DNA of 64,000 nt from Paragordius varius (lineage: Eukaryota > Animalia > Nematomorpha). Position numbers and translations under genes: made by a program. The stretch spans positions 4,030,001 through 4,094,000 of the forward strand of contig OZ176056.1 in assembly GCA_964247055.1 (NCBI GenBank). Direction: 5' to 3'. Shown here one piece after another: positions 6,099 through 36,108 of the stretch. Positions within the stretch are counted from its first letter, which is position 1. The number at the start of each line of letters is the position of its first letter. The notes under the pieces were generated by a model. The model made no database searches, was not told the DNA's origin, and was given only the letters and a program-made list of their open reading frames with translations.

Positions 6099-9000
6099 CT
6101 AACGAAAGCGGGCAGGTTTCTGACGACTTCTTGTCGTGTACAGTCGTTCTTGTGTTTTAGCGGGGGAGTAAATTGCCTCAGGTTTCTGGGTATTATCATT
6201 ATTTGGACTTTCGGCTGTCGGAGTAATTGGTTCGATTTCGCCCCTTGAATTGATCGTGTTTGGTTGGGTTTCAACGATTGTTCCATCATCCGTGGCAGTG
6301 GTTACCTCCTCCTCATTTGTGATACTGGCAGTGGTCGGCTGTGGTTGTGGTTGTTGTACTATTTGGTCAGAGTGTTTCCTCACAACTTTGTGTTGGTCCT
6401 TGTCCCATACCTTGTATGAAAATAACCCTGTACGGTCCGTAATCTCTCCGGCGCGCCACCCTGGACTTAATTCATTTTTAATCATTACCTGGTCATTAAT
6501 GGCAAACTGCTGTCGGGGGGCCAGTGCATCTAACCATCTCTCCCTACTATTTAACCAGGTTAAGGGCGTATGGGGGGTGCGCTTGAAGATTAACTGGGCT
6601 GGGGTTTCTTTCGTTGTTGAGTGTATAGAATTTCTATACGCCCATAGGCTCGTGTTAAACGCTTCGTGGGTGGATATCCCATTTTTATTCTTTTGTATTT
6701 ATTTTTATTGTACCTCCTAACCTTTCTACCATCCCATTACTCTTAGGGTGGTAGGGGATAACCTTAATATGTTTCACCCCTAACGTACTTAAGGTTGACG
6801 TAAAATACTCATTACTGAAATACGAAGCGTTATCGCTCACGATCTCTCTTGCAAAGCCAAACCTTGCAAACGTTTCTTCTAATTTGTGGATTATTTTCGC
6901 TGCGGTTACCTTTTTCAAAATAAATCCTTCTGCCCATTTCGAGGCACTATCAATTATCAACAACCAATACAAACCGTCTACCGGTCCGGCTATATCAATA
7001 TGCAAACGCTCCCACTCAGCAACATTATGATCCCACTGATACGTGGCATTCTGAGTAACATTCGGCCTACTACGTTGGCACGATTCGCATTGACTACTGG
7101 TTTTTACCAGGTCATTTTCTAATTCTGGCCAATAACACGTAAATCTGGCCATCGCTTTCATGATCTCTACGTTGTTATGCCCGCTGTGTAGGTATCTCAC
7201 CACCTATTTTTGGAGGGGCTTCGGAATTACTATCCGATCATTTAAACTTAATAAGCCATATTGATATGCCAACTCGTCTTTACGGTTTACAAACTTTTCT
7301 AATTCTGGAAAACTCCAGTCATGGTTGTTTAACGCTTTAATTACTTTTTGTAATACTGAATCTAATGCGGTTTCTTTTCAAATTTCATCTCTGCTTAACC
7401 GCACGTTATGACAATTCAAAAATCTCAAATATCTGGTAACCGCATAATCTTCATCATAGGCAACGATCTCGTCAATCGGCCATCTCGATAAATAATCAGC
7501 TCTATTTTGAGCCCCTTTTTGATGACTTATTTCAAAGTCGTATTCATTTATCATATTAATCCACCTTAGTATTTTAGCATTTATCTCTTTTAAATTTCGA
7601 TCTCTATTTATTAACTTTGCTAAAGGTAAATGGTCAGTATATTATAAATTTTCTACCATATATGAAACTATGAAACTTTCGTAACGCAAATAATATTGCT
7701 TTTAATTCCTTCTCTATAGTGGAATAATTCCTTTCAGCGTTGCTACACTTTTGTGAGGCATACGCTATCGGTATGCTTTCACTATTAACTTCATGACTTA
7801 AAATACATCCGAATCCTAAATCTGACGCATCAGTTTCTATTATCAATTTCCTATTCGGATTATATGGTGTTAAAACACTTTTTCGCTTAACAAATTCTTA
7901 GCTGCTAACCAGCTTTTCTCATGTTTCTCGGTCCAACACCATCTCGTATTTTTACTAGTTAATTCATGTAAGGGCCGACTATCATTTGTAATTTTGGTAT
8001 AAAGCGTTCATGGAATGTCAAAAAACCTAAAAAACTACGTAACGACTTTTTATCTACCGCCCTTTTTAGTTCCTTAATTGCTTTGATGCTTTCACATGGG
8101 ATTATACCCTTTTTCGATATTTTAAACCCTAATTAGTTTACTGATTCTGCGCCCAATTTTATCTTGTCTTAATTTAAATCCGGACTTATCGAGACGACTT
8201 AATACGTTATTTAAATTGTTAATGTGTTCATTTTCCTTCCTACCAGTCACTAGGACGTCATCTAAATATACGCAAGTTCCCGGACTTTCAGCCAGCACTT
8301 GTTTCATCACTCTTTGGAAGATGATAGGTGCCGTAGCCAGTCCAAACGGCATGCGTTTGTTTCTAAAAAAACCTTTATGTGTTGAGATAGTTAACAATTC
8401 TTGACACTCCTCTGCCACTGGCATCTGGAGGTAAGCATCTTTTAAATCAATTTTCGTGAATGTGATACCTTCACCTATTTTCGATACCAACTCATCAAAC
8501 GTGGGGATTATGTGGGAGTCTTCTTGCAACCACTTATTAATCGTTACCCGAAAATCACTACATTAATTCGCCATTCGGTTTAAGTACATTAACCGTAGGC
8601 GTGGCCCATGTCACAGGTGTGGTGTTAGGATCAACCGGTTCTAAAATGCCTATCTTTTAGCCTCGTCAGCTCTTTCTCCACCTTTTCTCTCAATGGAAAA
8701 GGCTGCGACATGGCCATACTTTCGGGATCGCATTCGCTGCAATGCGAATTATTACAGGGTCCTTATAACACCCTAACTTATTTTCGAATAAATTTTTAAA
8801 ATTTTCACAAATCTCATTCAATTTAAGATAATTAACTTTAACCTGTCTCAATCTGGAATTTCGCCATCCAGTCCAGTCCACAGATTAGCGGGGCCATCCC
8901 CATCGTTTTGCTTAGGACACATATGTCCCCGGCCATTTGTTTACCATTTACCTGGACCTTGACACTTGCTGTCTCCCATCATTGGCACTGTGGTATTGTT

Positions 9001-9180
9001 GTACGATTTTACTGGGGGTGTCGGACTCAGCTTGGGTTTACCGATTTGCTCCCATGTGGCAAAGTTTATTACACTAATGTCCGAACCGGTATCATAGATA
9101 AAGTCTTTTTTTAACCCGTTTATTACTAGTGTTATCAGTAAGGGAGTTAGCGCCTTATGACGCACGTTAACTTCCTTCAA
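6099..9180 (-). pseudogene. pol: Retrotransposon pol (protease, RT, RNase H, integrase) broken by stops and frameshifts
   Basis: ORF pieces: 9180-8941 (FIYDTGSDISVI), 8529-8122 (KIDLKDAYLQ..MPFG..YLDD), 7846-7634 (IIETDASD..PIAYAS), 7203-6685 (HHCC, HIDIAGP, SDN, GMVER) and 6485-6099 (W.AG.I..G.FSY.V..RKHSDQI). Confidence 0.92.
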
Positions 9181-9190
9181 TAATTGCCTA

Positions 9191-9993
9191 TTGAAGTTGG
9201 GTCTTTGTTATTTGGCCACACACATTCTCGCAAAATGGTTCAGCTTTCCGCATTTGTTGCAGGATCGTCTCCAGACTAGACACTTGTTGGGTGGGTCTGT
9301 GGTGCCGCAATATTTACATGTGGTAGAAGATTTTATTATTGTTTGTCGATTGGATTTATTATGTTGTAACCGATTGATATTATTATTGCTGTTACTGTAT
9401 CGATTGCTATTGTTATTACTATTATTGTTATTCTGTTATCCAGCCCTAGCAGACTCATGTGCTAGTGCGAGATCTACGATTGTTTCTAGTGGGGCAGGAA
9501 TACCGTTTATCAAAGCATCTGGATACCTGGAATGGATATCCATCTCTAGTTGAGGCTGTCGCAGTCCTATTACGAATGCATCATGAATACGTTGTTCTAT
9601 GGCTTCAGTGAATTGAGCTTCTTCAGCTCCTATCTTGACACGCTCAAGGAATTGGGTAAAACTTTCACCCTCGTTGCGTACCAGCCTATAAAATTCAAAA
9701 CGACTTTGGAATTTTGATTTTGTCGGATTGAATATTTTTTTGCCTGTTTCCGTAATCTCCGCCCATGTGGCGTCTTTTATTTTTTTGGGGTATGGGTGTT
9801 GGTTAATCTTTCTTACTATCATGAATCCGCCATATGCTAGTATCGTTGATTTAAGCGTTCTTTCGGTTACTGGAATATCCTTTGCCTCGAGTACGTTGCT
9901 AATATACTCGAGGTACTCTTCAAATTTATTATTATCGTTATATTTTTCTATGGCTAAATTCGCAACACTAGTATGAGGAGCTGTGGTGTTCAT
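9191..9993 (-). pseudogene. gag: Retrotransposon gag with two zinc-knuckle motifs and a premature stop
   Basis: ORF 9993-9436 ends in TAA. The same frame continues through an N-rich linker to CKYCGTTDPPNKC and CNKCGKLNHFARMC. Confidence 0.85.
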
Positions 9994-28600: not shown

Positions 28601-31600
28601 GGTCCATTTCTCTACCCATGTACCATAGAATACAGTTTAATTTGTGCCGCCATATCCTATGTTATGTGGAAACATGTCGGGGAAGTCCCTAGATTTCGAA
28701 AGTTTGTTTTGCTATTAGAAATATTTTATCAAATACGGCAAATAAAATGAAATATAACGATTTCTACCGTTAATGAAATAAATTTTTATTTAAAGCTATA
28801 CCCTTTAATTTAAATAGATCGCGGAGAGCCCGTAATTCATACACTGTCAATTGCGAAGGCGCTAGTCAGGGTTTATTTGCGGGATTAATTGTATTAGTGT
28901 TCTCAATAGTCAGTCTTATCCTATTTTTTGTGCTGATAGAACGGCCCGAAAATTTCTTTTTTTCAGTTTACCTAAACCAGGTTTTTGTCAACACTTTTAT
29001 ATTTTTACAAATTATATTGCCAAATTTTATATTTACTACATACAATTCAAACTGAATGATATTTCATCATGTTTATTTCACAAATAATAGAAAATAAATG
29101 TTTTTCTTAAGGCTACATAAAATATATATTGTTAAATTTCTCTAACAATGAATTTCAAATGTATTTATTTACTCAAAAAAGCCATATATTATATTGATTG
29201 CCTATGCTGTTAGTTCGCAATTTAAAAAAATCAAATTATGTTACATATCTTAGGTCACCGAGATTGCCGTTTATTTCATAGCTCTGTGTGCATGTGTCAG
29301 GGCTTTCATGCAGATTAAAAAGCTTAAATTTGTGGAACTTATAGATCGAGAGCAGTTAGATAGCCTTTTACTATGTATATCAGTGGCGGGAGAATTGTTA
29401 TTCTCCACTTTTAGTATAGTTTCCTGTATGGGTGTAGTACCTAGCACACCACATGGAATGTCAACTTCTAACGGGGGCCACCAACACTCTGTAAATACGG
29501 CTCCATTAATTATTAAACCATACTATCCTACAGACTACATTTATTCAAGCAATTCCCCCCAAGATCCATATTATGAATCAAAATCGAATGATAACACGAA
29601 TTATGAAGATGAACTCATTAGGATTCTATCGGATGCGAGGTTAACCCGTTCACAACGGGAAACACAAAATGGTGATATCGAAACCGATAAATCAGTATCA
29701 AAGCTTGACCAATTCCTCAAAAGTAATGGACATCAATTGAATGTCACGGAACAAAAAATTTTACAACAATTCCTTACCATATTAAAGAAATTAAAACCAG
29801 AGATCGATTTAGCAAAAAATACTAAAAAGGATCATTATAATTCCCCTTCGTTTAGCACGCCTCAAAATATGGATTTGACTAAGGCTATAAAATATTTCTC
29901 CAATTATTTACATGCCTTCGAAACAAATTTCACGGCTTTAAATCAAAGTTTTTATAATCACACAAATGATAATAGTAGTTTAGCTCGTAATGTTAAATCC
30001 ATAACTTCTCATTACAATAAACGGGTGGAAGAGTTTGAACATCCCTCGAAGACTAAAATCTCATATAAAACTATCTTGCTGATATGTAGCTCATTGGCTA
30101 ACATTATACAAGCCATTACACAAACCGTATTTATATTGGATGCCCTAAACAGGTTTATTAAATTATAAAACAAATATATTTAGACGCATACAGTTAAACC
30201 TATTTTCATGAAAAACAGATGATGCAAATCTTTTTAGTACAAAATATTATATTTAGAGAGTAAGAAATACATTATTATTCAATCGATTGGCATAATTACA
30301 TAAATGGTTTTATTTTAAGGACTTAACTATTTTGATATTATTCAGTAACTAAAACTACATATGTGGACAAATAGTGTTATGTAACAATTGAGTGAAAATG
30401 GTTTTCCAGATATAATTGGCAAAATTTTTTTTAGTAACCATCACTCCTCAAAGTCACCCTAGAACACTATAAAATTTTTATACATTTCGAATTTACCTTA
30501 AAAACATATTAAGTATTTATGGCCCAATAAAACTCAAAATAAATTGAAATAGTTCTTTATAGCATAGTTTATTATTTTTTCCGTATTACGTTAGCTTTAA
30601 ACGAAATTATATTATATTTAAGTAATTTTTGATATTCAAATGCAAAATTATTTTAGGCGAAAATACAGTATACATTTTAATGTATGTTCAATAATTTTAT
30701 TGCCAGTCGAATAACATAAATGGTTTATCCAATGCGTAAAATACTGACCCACGAAATTATTTCGTAGTACACATATGAAAGAGGATTGACGTGAGAATTA
30801 ACATAGGCTGTAATTTGATGGATATTTTTTAATGTTAAAATTTGATAATATTATAGCAATTTATGTTAACATTTGTAATATTGTTGTTACGTATTTAGAT
30901 GCGGAATTAAGTTTTTATCTTGGATAAATTAATAAATAGTAAAATATGTATTTTAAGATATTTTATGTTAATTATTCCTAAATTTAATAATAAATTTTTT
31001 TCAACATGCTAAATACCTGTATTAATCAATCTTGGTATTATTATTTTATATAGTTAATACTAATTAAAAAACACAAGTAAATGTATATTTGTGAAAATTT
31101 AAGTAAATTTTAGATTTTTGTCTTTTATGTTTTGCATTATTAATTATTGATAATTTTTAAGTATTTCAGACATTTTCAGGTAAATTTCGGTTTTTAAATT
31201 TAGTCAAATTTAATTTTTTTTGTTCATTTTATGTAACATTGTTAATAGTAATCAATTACTACATATTTTGGGCATTATTATAAATACAAATAAAAATGCG
31301 GTTTTTAATAAATTTAGTAAAAAAATTTAGTTTTTTTTGTTTTTTAGGTTTTGCATTGTTAATTGTAATTAATTACTACATATTTTGGACATTATTATAA
31401 ATACAGGTAAAAATTGCGGTTTTTAACAAATTTAGTAAATATTTAGTTTTTTTTGTTTTTTAGGTTTTGCATTGTTAATTGTAATTAATTACTACATATT
31501 TTGGACATTATTATAAATACAGGTAAAAATTGCGGTTTTTAACAAATTTAGTAAAAATTTAGTTTTTTTTTTAGATTTTGCATTGTTAATTGTAATTAAT

Positions 31601-34600
31601 TACTACATATTTTGGACATTATTATAAATACAGGTAAAAATTGCGGTTTTTAATAAATTTAGTAAGAATTTAGTTTTTTTTTGTTTTTTAGGTTTTGCAT
31701 TGTTAATTGTAATTAATTATTACATATTTTGGACATTTAAATAAATACAGGTAAAAATTGCGGTTTTTAATAAATTTAGTAAAAATTTTAACATTCGTAT
31801 TTTATATCATTGTTATTTGTTATTAATTACTAAACATTTTGGACATTTAAAAAAACAGGTGAAAATCGAGGTTTTTAATAAATTAAAAAAATTTTAATTT
31901 TTTGTGTAACCTTGCTAATTTATTAATTACTATATATTTTTGATACATTGATATATACAGGTAAAAATTACTATCATTTGCGGTTTTTTAAATTTTTAGG
32001 AAAATTATTTTTTTGTTTTACATTGATAATTAATATATTAAATAGTTAACATATCTATGCATACAGGTAATATGCATGTGCGGTTTTATGTTTGACATTT
32101 TATTTATCAAAATCCAACTATGTACATTTTAACAAACACCTTATATCACCAAAGATTCAAAATAAGATCAAGATATATAAAACATCTTTTTAAGTATCTG
32201 AATATCGCCAAATATAAATATATTTATTTAAATTATAAATGTATAATTATACAAAATATTCTTAATATTATGTTTAAAATTAGCATTCTTCTTATTGATA
32301 TTACAGGTAACTTCTTTCTAATATTGATATACGATGCGGTGTGCGTTCATGATCATATCTTAAGGTAGATACTATCAACTAAATATAAGATAGAAAGGTA
32401 TATATTAATATTTTAGAAAATTGATACCTGGATTCTAGAAGTATTTTTATCATAATTTTAAATATTGGGGGCAAAAACATTCAAAGTTTGAAAGGAAACT
32501 AAATAAGGTTGACTTGGCTTTTAACAACTAAATTTGCAAAAAAATATTTTCTTCATGATAAAAATTAAAAAATGATACTTTTTGTTTTTGCGTTTTCGTT
32601 CTACCATCCCAAACTATATATCACCAATGACGTCAAATAAAAAATAGAAACAAATATTTTTTTTTCAAAAGCTTTGAATACAACAGCACTTCAAAAACTA
32701 AGCAGACAACACTAACATTAGTTGCTTTGGTGAAGAATTTCATATTTATAGTTTAAGATAGTAGAACGAAAACGCAAAAAAAGTATCATTTTTGAATTTT
32801 TTATCATGAAGAAAATATTTTTTTGCAAATTTGTTAAAAAGCCAAGTCCCTTTCAAACTTTGAATGTTTTTCCCCCCAATATTTAAAATTATGATAAAAA
32901 TACTTCTAGAATCCAGGTATCAATTTTCTAATATATTAATAAATACTTTTCTATCTTATATTTAGTTGATAGAATCTACCTTAAGATATGATCATGAAAG
33001 CACAACACAACGTACATCAATTTTAGAAAGATTACCTGTAATATCAATAAGAAGAATGCTAATTTTAAACATAATATTATGAATATTTTGTATAATTATA
33101 CATTTATAATTTAAATAAATATATTTATATTTGGCGATATTCAGATACTTAAAAAGATGTTTTATATATCTTGATATTTTGAATCTTTGGTGATATAAGG
33201 TGTTTGTTAAAATGTACATAGTTGGATTTTGATAAATAAAATGTCAAACATAAAACCGCACATGCATATTACCTGTATGCATAGATATGTTAACTATTTA
33301 ATATATTAATTATCAATGTAAAACAAAAAAAATAATTTTCCTAAAAATTTAAAAAACCGCAAATGATTGTAATTTTTACCTGTATATATCAATGTATCAA
33401 AAATATATAGTAATTAATAAATTAGCAAGGTTATACAAAAAATTAAAAATTTTTTAATTTATCAAAAACCTCAATTTTCACCTGTTTTTTTAAATGTCCA
33501 AAATGTTTAGTAATTAATAACAAATAAATATGATACAAAATACGAATGTTAAAATTTTTACTAAATTTATTAAAAACCGCAATTTTTACCTGTATTTATT
33601 TAAATGTCCAAAATATGTAGTAATTAATTACAATTAACAATGCAAAACCTAAAAAACAAAAAAAAACTAAATTTTTACTAAATTTGTTAAAAACCGCAAT
33701 TTTACCTGTATTTATAATAATGTCCAAAATATGTAGTAATTAATTACAATTAACAATGCAAAACCTAAAAAACAAAAAAAACTAAATTTTTTTACTAAAT
33801 TTATTAAAAACCGCATTTTTATTTGTATTTATAATAATGCCCAAAATATGTAGTAATTGATTACTATTAACAATGTTACATAAAATGAACAAAAAAAATT
33901 AAATTTGACTAAATTTAAAAACCGAATATTTACCTGAAAATGTCTGAAATACTTAAAAATTATCAATAATTAATAATGCAAAACATAAAAGACAAAAATC
34001 TAAAATTTACTTAAATTTTCACAAATATACATTTACTTGTGTTTTTTAATTAGTATTAACTATATAAAATAATAATACCAAGATTGATTAATACAGGTAT
34101 TTAGCATGTTGAAAAAAATTTATTATTAAATTTAGGAATAATTAACATAAAATATCTTAAAATACATATTTTACTATTTATTAATTTATCCAAGATAAAA
34201 ACTTAATTCCGCATCTAAATACGTAACAACAATATTACAAATGTTAACATAAATTGCTATAATATTATCAAAATTTAACATTAAAAAATATCCATCAAAT
34301 TACAGCCTATGTTAATTCTCACGTCAATCCTCTTTCATATGTGTACTACGAAATAATTTCGTGGGTCAGTATTTTACGCATTGGATAAACCATTTATGTT
34401 ATTCGACTGGCAATAAAATTATTAAACATACGTTAAAATGCATACTGTAATGTTTCAAGGATTAATATGAATCGTTCAAGGGGGTGAATTTGAGGTGTAA
34501 ATGGTATAAAATTTATTTTAAGGCAAGGTTATTTTAATGTAAATTACCATTAATTATTATTTTTGGCCAATTCAAAAATATTTGCATTGCTAGATTTAGT

Positions 34601-36108
34601 GTTACAGAGCATCAAGAAGTAACTAAACCCGGTCGACAAAGTGTAACTTTCCTGATTCTTTGTAATTTCGCACTTTGGGCCTTCAATACATTTGCTAATG
34701 AGCGGACACGAACAAACCCCATTCAAATCGAATTTTATGGTTATATTACATGGAATATCATAACACATATTTGTACACCTCTTTCCATATTTTACAGGTA
34801 TTACATATCAACACAAATTATTAGTAATGTTTTTTATTGAATCAAAATTCCTAATATCCTAAAAAAAATTTTTTTATAACATTTTGTGTCTGCAAAATTA
34901 TGTAGGTAAACTAAATTTTTATGTTCTATTTTTAACGGATATCTCTAAGTCTTAAATTTACACAACAAAAATTTAAAATGTATATCGACAATGCGTGAAA
35001 ATCATATAACAATTTTTTGAAAAGACACTATCATACTTTTATAAACCTTGATATTTTAATATCTATATTACAATTTAAACTTTGAGCATTTTACCAATTT
35101 ATTTCATTTAATTTTTATTTGCAAATCAATATTTAATGGTAAAATATATTGAGCTTGTAAAAAGCCCGTGATTAGATTTTTAAATAATCTTAAGTATTAA
35201 ATTGTTTATAAAAGATTTAGAGTGAATGAGTGTGAACAATTTTATAATATCATCTATCATTTATGCCCGCTAATTACACAACCTGTACTAAATAACTAAT
35301 ATACACTCATGACAATATTAATATCATAGCATATGTTATTAGAAATATGAACGGAATCTTTTTAAAAATCCTTAGCTATCCATAATTTGCATATATTCAC
35401 TATAAAGGATAAATGCGGTATTAAGATATTATACTAAAATTCTCATTTTAAAATGTTTTTAGAATCAAGATTTTGGCGTAACATTCCATAAATATTTGAA
35501 GATAAAATTTGTATAAAAAATATACAGTTTTGAGTCCCTTTATTAAAGGGTAAGGACTTTAATTGTATTCTGATATGTAAAGGCTTTAACACTCGCCTGC
35601 CTAGGGCTGACAGTGAGGATGAAAAAACTGCGTAGTTGGGTTTGAACTCAAGCACGCAGTCAAAGAGTTGGCCTGTTGCATTAGTGATTTAAAAAACTCT
35701 AAAGAAAATAATGGATGCGAAATAGTTTGAGATGAGGATATTTTTACAATACATTCTCTGCAAAATTTGTAACATGCGCCTTGAAAAGCATATTTTTGAA
35801 TTTGGCCCAATGCTAAAAATATTAAGATAATTAAATTTTAAATGGCCTGGTATAAACTATACAAAAGGTCAGAAGTGTCAATTTACATTCTGATGCCATG
35901 TAGGAAATTTTTCATTTTAATATTTATATTTTTAAAAATCGAGAGAAAAAATGGTGGTAATACCTTTTAGTCATTTAAAATACAGATTATGACCTTTCAT
36001 AATTCTCGTTACTGTATACATTTTATATCTTTTTATAGATATCATTCAACTGCATGTTTGGCGGAGGTGTGGAAACAAGCGTACAAAACACATATCGATG
36101 AAAATTAA
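25684..36108 (+). CDS. Otop: Otopetrin-family proton channel, 13 exons, ~976 aa
   Basis: Exons 25684-25714, 25788-26156, 26528-26801, 27043-27157, 27242-27473, 27628-27788, 27882-28059, 28162-28227, 28533-28701, 28818-28980, 29254-30152, 34594-34797 and 36039-36108 join in frame. Motifs: GSFYLRMGA.FG.GSMIY, ARFGLAHLIATNL.VW, PFLYPCTIEYSLIC, NC.GASQGLFAG, KPGRQ.VTFL, FYG..W..I..P..IFYRYHS. The start exon is less certain. Confidence 0.93.
28257..28476. mobile_element. hAT-like MITE family 2 copy in an otopetrin intron
   Basis: CTGGGGTGTCCAACAC ... GTTGGACACCTCTG inverted ends. Confidence 0.65.
30666..34447. mobile_element. Foldback-type element with giant terminal inverted repeats and Tc1/mariner-like ends
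   Basis: TA|CAGTAT at 30664-30671 and ATACTG|TA ending at 34449. Arms 30666-32618 and 32747-34447 are near-identical reverse complements around a 128-bp spacer. No transposase ORF. Confidence 0.85.
31255..31900 (+). repeat. ~115-bp tandem repeat inside the left foldback arm (about 6 units; about 4 inverted units at ~33480-33900)
   Basis: The unit ACATATTTTGGACATTATTATAAATACAGGTAAAAATTGCGGTTTTT recurs near 31260, 31378, 31494, 31605, 31722 and 31834. Confidence 0.85.

Follow-up and report, generated by a model that had tools for sequence, protein, structure and literature searches.

The window analysed here is a stretch of 64,000 nucleotides (64 kb) from the nematomorph Paragordius varius (contig OZ176056.1, positions 4,030,001 to 4,094,000), and coordinates without a contig label count from its first base. 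Within an intron of an otopetrin gene, it contains a 3782-bp segment that consists almost entirely of two inverted arms. The evidence argues strongly that this segment arose by a single insertion of a foldback-shaped DNA transposon, non-coding and non-autonomous, with ends of the IS630-Tc1-mariner type, located in a miniature inverted-repeat transposable element (MITE) within the intron, and that its arms have been homogenised by arm-to-arm copying. It is most likely an inert passenger there.

Structure of the element and its insertion site

Both ends of the element were read base by base. The element proper extends from 30666 to 34447 (3782 bp), and the interval 30664-34449 given in a preliminary description of the window takes in a TA on both sides, in the order TA, CAGT...ACTG, TA. 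The left end reads ...aaaa TA CAGTATACATTTTAATG... and the right end, as the reverse complement, ...acat TA CAGTATGCATTTTAACG, and the tips at both ends have the form CAGTAT(A/G)CATTTTAA.... The TA dinucleotides at 30664-30665 and 34448-34449 are the left and right copies of a putative target-site duplication. Thus, the reading of both ends confirms the TA flanks and the CAGT termini that had been described.

A repeat finder and a global alignment gave a left arm of 1956 bp (30666-32621), which begins CAGTATACATTTTAATG, and a right arm of 1704 bp (32744-34447), which terminates in ...CATACTG. Between them, the global alignment places a non-palindromic spacer of 122 bp (32622-32743), the loop of the hairpin. 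These values refine the arms of 1953 and 1701 bp and the 128-bp spacer of the preliminary description, and the arms account for 97% of the length of the element (1956 + 1704 of 3782 bp). The inverted segments reported by the repeat finder are collinear, from 30664-31221 and 33892-34449 inward, and the element is the sole inverted repeat of at least 100 nt with arms within 8 kb of each other in the whole window. No Rfam family was found at E ≤ 1 between 30000 and 35000.

Alignment of one arm against the other shows 1666 matches and 35 mismatches, an identity of 97.9% over the aligned bases, with gaps made up of a single 228-bp block and eight small insertions or deletions of 1-15 bp each. The 228-bp block corresponds to about two subrepeats of 117 bp. 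Tandem Repeats Finder detects this 117-bp unit in 6.3 copies in the left arm (31195-31907) and in 4.2 copies in the right arm (33456-33936), and the arms are unequal in length because of this difference in copy number. The two extra units of about 115 bp previously noticed in the left arm are therefore real. The identity of the arms is not uniform: over the outer ~1.6 kb it is 98-100%, but over the ~350 bp nearest the spacer it drops to 93-95%.

The element is flanked by the two parts of an older MITE. The left part, with termini of the TATA|CCATTTACAG type and approximate ends, lies at 30438-30663 (631 first-look candidates in the genome), and the right part, which ends ...GTAAATGG followed by TATA, lies at 34450-34504 (227 first-look candidates). 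When the flanks are rejoined with one TA kept, intact MITE paralogues align unbroken across the junction, showing that the foldback entered a pre-existing MITE of ~283 bp (roughly 30438-34504). The flanking MITE halves that had been described are confirmed. The termini of this MITE, TATA|CCATTTACAG..., with subterminal repeats of ~21 bp, are those of a 3.2-kb palindromic autonomous Tc1 element in the same genome. The partner family of the MITE is thus identified, and it is distinct from the foldback family.

The intron was defined with the Otopetrin profile, PF03189, which was searched in six frames across the whole assembly. There are six matches, all exon-sized, all on the plus strand, and all in one gene at the window locus; this search detected no second otopetrin locus in the assembly. 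The exons were examined singly, by reference. The 3′ part of the upstream exon is an open frame at 29308-30152 (plus strand; start of the exon not fixed) that matches profile positions 290-329 and 333-365, and the downstream exon at 34594-34797 (plus strand) matches positions 365-434. The upstream exon ends ...AAC AG|GT, with the donor at 30152|30153. The residues R-F of profile positions 365-366 open the downstream match and are also reached by the read-through of the upstream exon. From this overlap, the intron interrupts the codon of position 365 (R) as AG|A (30151-30152 and 34594), and the acceptor AG is at 34592-34593, with the exon beginning at 34594. The profile matches on either side and the split codon thus confirm the location in an otopetrin intron and refine it to a GT..AG intron of 4441 bp on the plus strand, 30153-34593, which holds the nested transposons. 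The element occupies 85% of this intron, and its ends are separated from the 5′ splice site by 511 nt and from the 3′ splice site by 144 nt.

The foldback family and the evolution of its arms

Relatives of the element were sought in the 110.6-Mb assembly, which has 44 contigs and is AT-rich (~25% GC). The terminal 558 bp gave 366 first-look candidates, and the 40 of these that were scored are 90-95% identical, many of them paired in inverted orientation at distances of 3.5-5.9 kb. When up to 3 mismatches are allowed, a tip motif of 27 bases (TA and a further 25) has 124 forward and 122 reverse matches, 246 in all, compared with 0 for the reversed-motif control; from this count, the subfamily would comprise about 120 elements. 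The shorter 19-base tip TACAGTATGCATTTTAATG, with up to 1 mismatch, has 569 + 562 = 1131 matches (control 0), ~4.6 times as many as the 27-base motif, which suggests that over 500 elements in the genome have the same tip. Some of the 19-base-tip pairs are just 180-216 bp apart (for example, G000:C1:7196703-7196887, C1:13786073-13786264, and C2:4826561-4826740), and the tip is therefore common to a wider group that includes MITE-sized members.

Nine further full copies, 3.5-5.9 kb long, have the same architecture. Their sampled ends nearly all read TA|CAGTATGCATTTTAATG followed by unrelated flank, the exceptions being copies truncated at the tip. The 122-bp spacer is kept at 87-94% in six of the nine, in either orientation. 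None of the nine contains an open reading frame (ORF) longer than 130 aa, and a tblastn search with 29 Tc1-like ORFs of the same genome against 19 loci of the family gave no match. The element is an ordinary non-coding, non-autonomous copy of a hairpin-shaped family with hundreds of copies. With the 117-bp array and nine like copies, its description as a genuine Foldback-type element with modular long terminal inverted repeats (TIRs) and a variable tandem array stands.

Judged by its ends, with their TA flanks and CAGT tips, the element fits the IS630-Tc1-mariner superfamily. Both of its ends abut TA, as does nearly every end sampled elsewhere, with unrelated flanks, which is consistent with a target-site duplication. 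Since the putative duplication is the 2-bp TA, membership in the FB/Tm1 and Galileo/P lineages is excluded: the flank bases past the TA differ on the two sides, contrary to the 9-bp duplication of Drosophila FB and Tm1, and the flanks share only TA, contrary to the 7-bp duplication of Galileo and the P lineage (P transposase was not searched for). 'Foldback' is valid as a structural description only. Whole-genome domain searches gave 135 hits to DDE_3, 61 to the mariner domain Transposase_1, and none to HTH_Tnp_Tc3_2. An inverted repeat/direct repeat organisation, as in Tc1 elements of the Sleeping Beauty or Tc3-like type, in which the terminal binding motif recurs within either long TIR, was also considered and rejected. 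The similarity of the terminal 40-mer to the rest of the arm is at the level of shuffled sequence (124 of 300 shuffles score as high), and 84 of 200 shuffles score as high against the 117-bp array.

The arms of the family change in two ways. The 117-bp array has 1-25 units per arm, and in seven of ten copies the two arms differ in their number of units; the array expands and contracts independently in either arm. Outside the array, the arms evolve in concert, from the tips inward, recently stopping short of the core. A tree of all 20 arms, built on their outer 540 bp, pairs the arms of the same copy as supported sisters in six of ten copies, with support of 100/99 for the copy in the window. 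The closest copy, G000:C5:10946267-10949838, is 94% identical to it, and 29 informative sites can be compared between the two. At 21 of these, in columns 146-1537, the variant occurs in only one of the two copies, and there in both arms, whereas at 7 it is specific to one arm and common to both copies, and all 7 lie in the innermost ~215 bp. Likewise, a tree of the inner 220 bp groups the arm upstream of the spacer in the window copy with its counterpart in the closest copy (WIN_A and L017_A; support 97/94). The arm-specific core signal is confined to this closest pair, and no fixed arm-type difference was found across the whole family; therefore, over longer times, the core has been homogenised too.

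We propose the following history for the element. It inserted at a TA inside the older MITE, within the otopetrin intron, and was presumably mobilised in trans by a Tc1/mariner-type transposase recognising the common terminal ~19-27 bp. Copying from arm to arm, from the tips inward but short of the core, keeps the arms alike. This copying may occur by a fold-back route during gap repair or transposition, in which the strand being synthesised, having copied one arm and the core, turns back on itself and serves as its own template for the other arm; alternatively, it may be ordinary intramolecular gene conversion. Transcribed within the pre-mRNA, the element would fold to a stem of ~1.5 kb that brings the original intron ends together, and would leave with the intron.

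A more far-reaching proposal is that this lineage systematically turns Tc1/mariner-type transposons into palindromes and keeps them so. The proposed route is a fold-back synthesis that is self-templated and accompanies transposition or break repair: after copying one arm and the core, the new strand would snap back and rebuild the other arm from itself. Transcribed intronic copies would double as sources of hairpin RNA that police the family. If true, this would account for the outer 1.5 kb being copy-specific in both arms while the core retains old differences between the arms, for the palindromic form that unrelated families, whether coding or not, all have here, and for the lack of a visible conventional partner. 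We consider this proposal speculative and unlikely as a whole.

The intronic hairpin and alternative explanations

The preliminary description had suggested that the pre-mRNA would form about 1.7 kb of double-stranded RNA (dsRNA), a substrate for ADAR or Dicer that could silence or edit the channel transcript. Folded as RNA (3782 nt), the element has a minimum free energy of -2400 kcal/mol, compared with about -620 for five shuffles, a difference well outside what chance would give. The predicted structure contains 1503 long-range pairs and includes helices that run without interruption for 345, 223, 167, 150, and 150 bp. Provided that the intron is transcribed, the dsRNA premise therefore holds, with a predicted stem of ~1.5 kb. 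If anything, the hairpin would bring the splice sites back to their original distance of ~657 nt. In the DNA, such a palindrome is a plausible cruciform or rearrangement hotspot. Extrusion of a cruciform would be damped by the inequality of the arms and by the 122-bp spacer.

The hairpin potential thus stands, whereas silencing or editing of the channel transcript by it is unsupported. That the intronic dsRNA is a Dicer or ADAR substrate that measurably silences or edits the otopetrin transcript would be in keeping with the very stable predicted hairpin and its perfect helices of up to 345 bp, with two Dicer/Drosha-like loci with paired RNase III domains on contig C4, and with the single detected otopetrin locus, which leaves no paralogue to buffer an effect. 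However, the duplex is wholly intronic. Small RNAs would therefore match the transposon family rather than the otopetrin exons, and adenosine-to-inosine changes would stay within the intron and would not recode the protein. Furthermore, no A_deamin (ADAR/ADAT1) domain was detected in the assembly, in a fragment-wise search that had no positive control and in which small exons may hide the domain. The genome has at least 120 copies of the subfamily, and the same tip is found on over 500 elements, so that such hairpins are evidently tolerated. In Caenorhabditis elegans, intronic Tc1 copies bypass the SOS splicing pathway that is triggered by inverted terminal repeats (ITRs) and are removed along with the intron (PMC12779559). 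We therefore regard an effect of the dsRNA on otopetrin as improbable. A near-perfect long hairpin inside a transcribed gene could instead be exploited by the host, its transcripts yielding small interfering RNAs that would act in trans to repress all of the TA|CAGT family. That family is large, and no active partner of it was detected, as would be expected under silencing. Nothing sets the window copy apart from other copies, however, and we give this explanation still less credence. Finally, a recognised fault of long-read libraries is the formation of long palindromes, and the hairpin might have come from a chimeric fold-back read or a mis-join. Against this, the arms differ by 35 substitutions, the 228-bp block, and eight small indels around a unique 122-bp spacer, the boundaries are exactly TA|CAGT, the rejoined flanks rebuild a MITE, and the same architecture recurs at roughly 120 other loci, with the spacer conserved in either orientation and 246 tip matches to 0 in the control. 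An assembly artefact, against which the preliminary description had also argued, is effectively refuted.

Several points weigh against the preferred explanation, the insertion of a non-autonomous transposon with IS630-Tc1-mariner-type ends. It draws on the assembled sequence, from which the physical continuity of the molecule and the fate of the transcript are deduced. The TA duplication is deduced from empty sites that are paralogous, not allelic, and the paralogues are only ~70% identical. Moreover, an autonomous partner with these ends was not found. The preliminary description had called for a genome search for copies and for an autonomous partner with the same TIR; the copies are there, in a family on a scale of at least 120, but none of the 30 best DDE_3 loci has the tip or is similar to the element. 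Pogo-type DDE_1 has no hits in the whole genome. When the coordinates of the transposase-domain hits were compared by eye with 100 listed termini, only 1 of 196 hits was close to any of them. This is a 186-bp DDE_3 fragment at G000:C11:458760-458945, 1.6 kb inside a right end at C11:460565, and the coincidence is compatible with chance, about one or two such cases being expected.

As a single locus, the element is of little weight, a tolerated intronic insertion in the sole detectable otopetrin gene of the genome. Its value is as a well-bounded case for the origin of foldbacks with Tc1/mariner-type ends and for the way in which their arms stay alike; here the outer arms are homogenised and the core is not, with a sharp transition between them. 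A genome with hundreds of such elements is also well suited to asking whether long intronic hairpins carry a cost.

Other features were seen in the course of the analysis. Multi-copy long open frames of up to 1351 aa (G000:C4:6686164-6686538, C4:13826009-13826383, C1:11736863-11737243, and others) have a weak, sub-threshold match to DDE_3 (profile positions 8-132, ~25 bits) and may be a large transposase-like gene family. In the window, a degraded long terminal repeat retrotransposon lies on the minus strand at 6250-9993 and coincides with the only GC-rich stretch of the window (39%); the zinc-binding and core domains of an integrase are at 6685-7200, and a frame resembling gag is at 9436-9990. 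A long multi-exon gene occupies ~37800-64000 on the minus strand; its short open frames resemble a helicase of the BRR2/SNRNP200 type, which we use as a candidate label.

Comparison with known systems

A structural parallel in the same genome is provided by palindromic Tc1 elements, which are likewise head-to-head palindromes that move as a unit and have some variants common to both arms. They differ in having two transposase ORFs (341 or 339 aa) and termini of the form TATA|CCATTTACAG..., and they have no sequence similarity to the foldback family. The 3.2-kb autonomous element is represented by G000:C2:4375636-4378834, C9:1405918-1409168, and C1:13995004-13998257 (loci L034-L039). It has two head-to-head ORFs for a 341-aa transposase (in one copy, the frame of one of the arms is 298 aa long), arms that are 98-98.7% identical, and termini TATA|CCATTTACAGTTCAAATTCACCC. 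Six sites separate the arm types in all three copies, and the element therefore moves as a unit; seven copy-specific sites are common to both arms, which points to some arm-to-arm copying. A second palindromic Tc1 family (G000:C11:1382023-1388546, C8:314154-320637, and C3:7586993-7593494; loci L042/43, L046/47, and L051/52) has arms of more than 3.1 kb with 99.7-100% identity around a spacer of ~260 bp, with the true ends further out, and a 339-aa (or truncated) transposase frame in either arm.

Among elements of other animals, Drosophila FB and Meloidogyne Tm1, Foldback elements linked to Mutator/Phantom, likewise have composite TIRs made up of variable-length tandem subrepeats and are mostly non-coding (PMC3169594). 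They differ from the window element in their 9-bp target duplications and in their subrepeats, which are 13-15 bp in Tm1 and short in FB, in place of the TA and the 117-bp units found here.

Tc4 of C. elegans is alike in that nearly all of the element consists of two long inverted arms, in the cut-and-paste chemistry of the IS630-Tc1-mariner type, and in the occurrence of non-coding copies together with a coding variant, which for the present family is only expected, none having been found. Tc4 has arms of ~0.8 kb and duplicates a TNA trinucleotide, whereas the window family has arms of 1.7-1.9 kb with a variable array of 117-bp units and abuts TA. Transcripts of Tc4 form duplexes of their ITRs (PMC12779559).

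Galileo, a 'Foldback-like' element of the P superfamily in Drosophila, resembles the present family in its long, internally repetitive TIRs and in its mostly non-autonomous copies (PMC3573991). Galileo makes 7-bp duplications, uses a P-type transposase, and has TIRs of at most ~1.2 kb; the window element has instead a 2-bp TA, CAGT tips, and arms that make up nearly its whole length. In Galileo, the number of tandem repeats differs between the two TIRs of one copy (PMC3573991), and the arrays of the present family, often unequal between the arms of a copy, resemble those of the F subfamily of Galileo.

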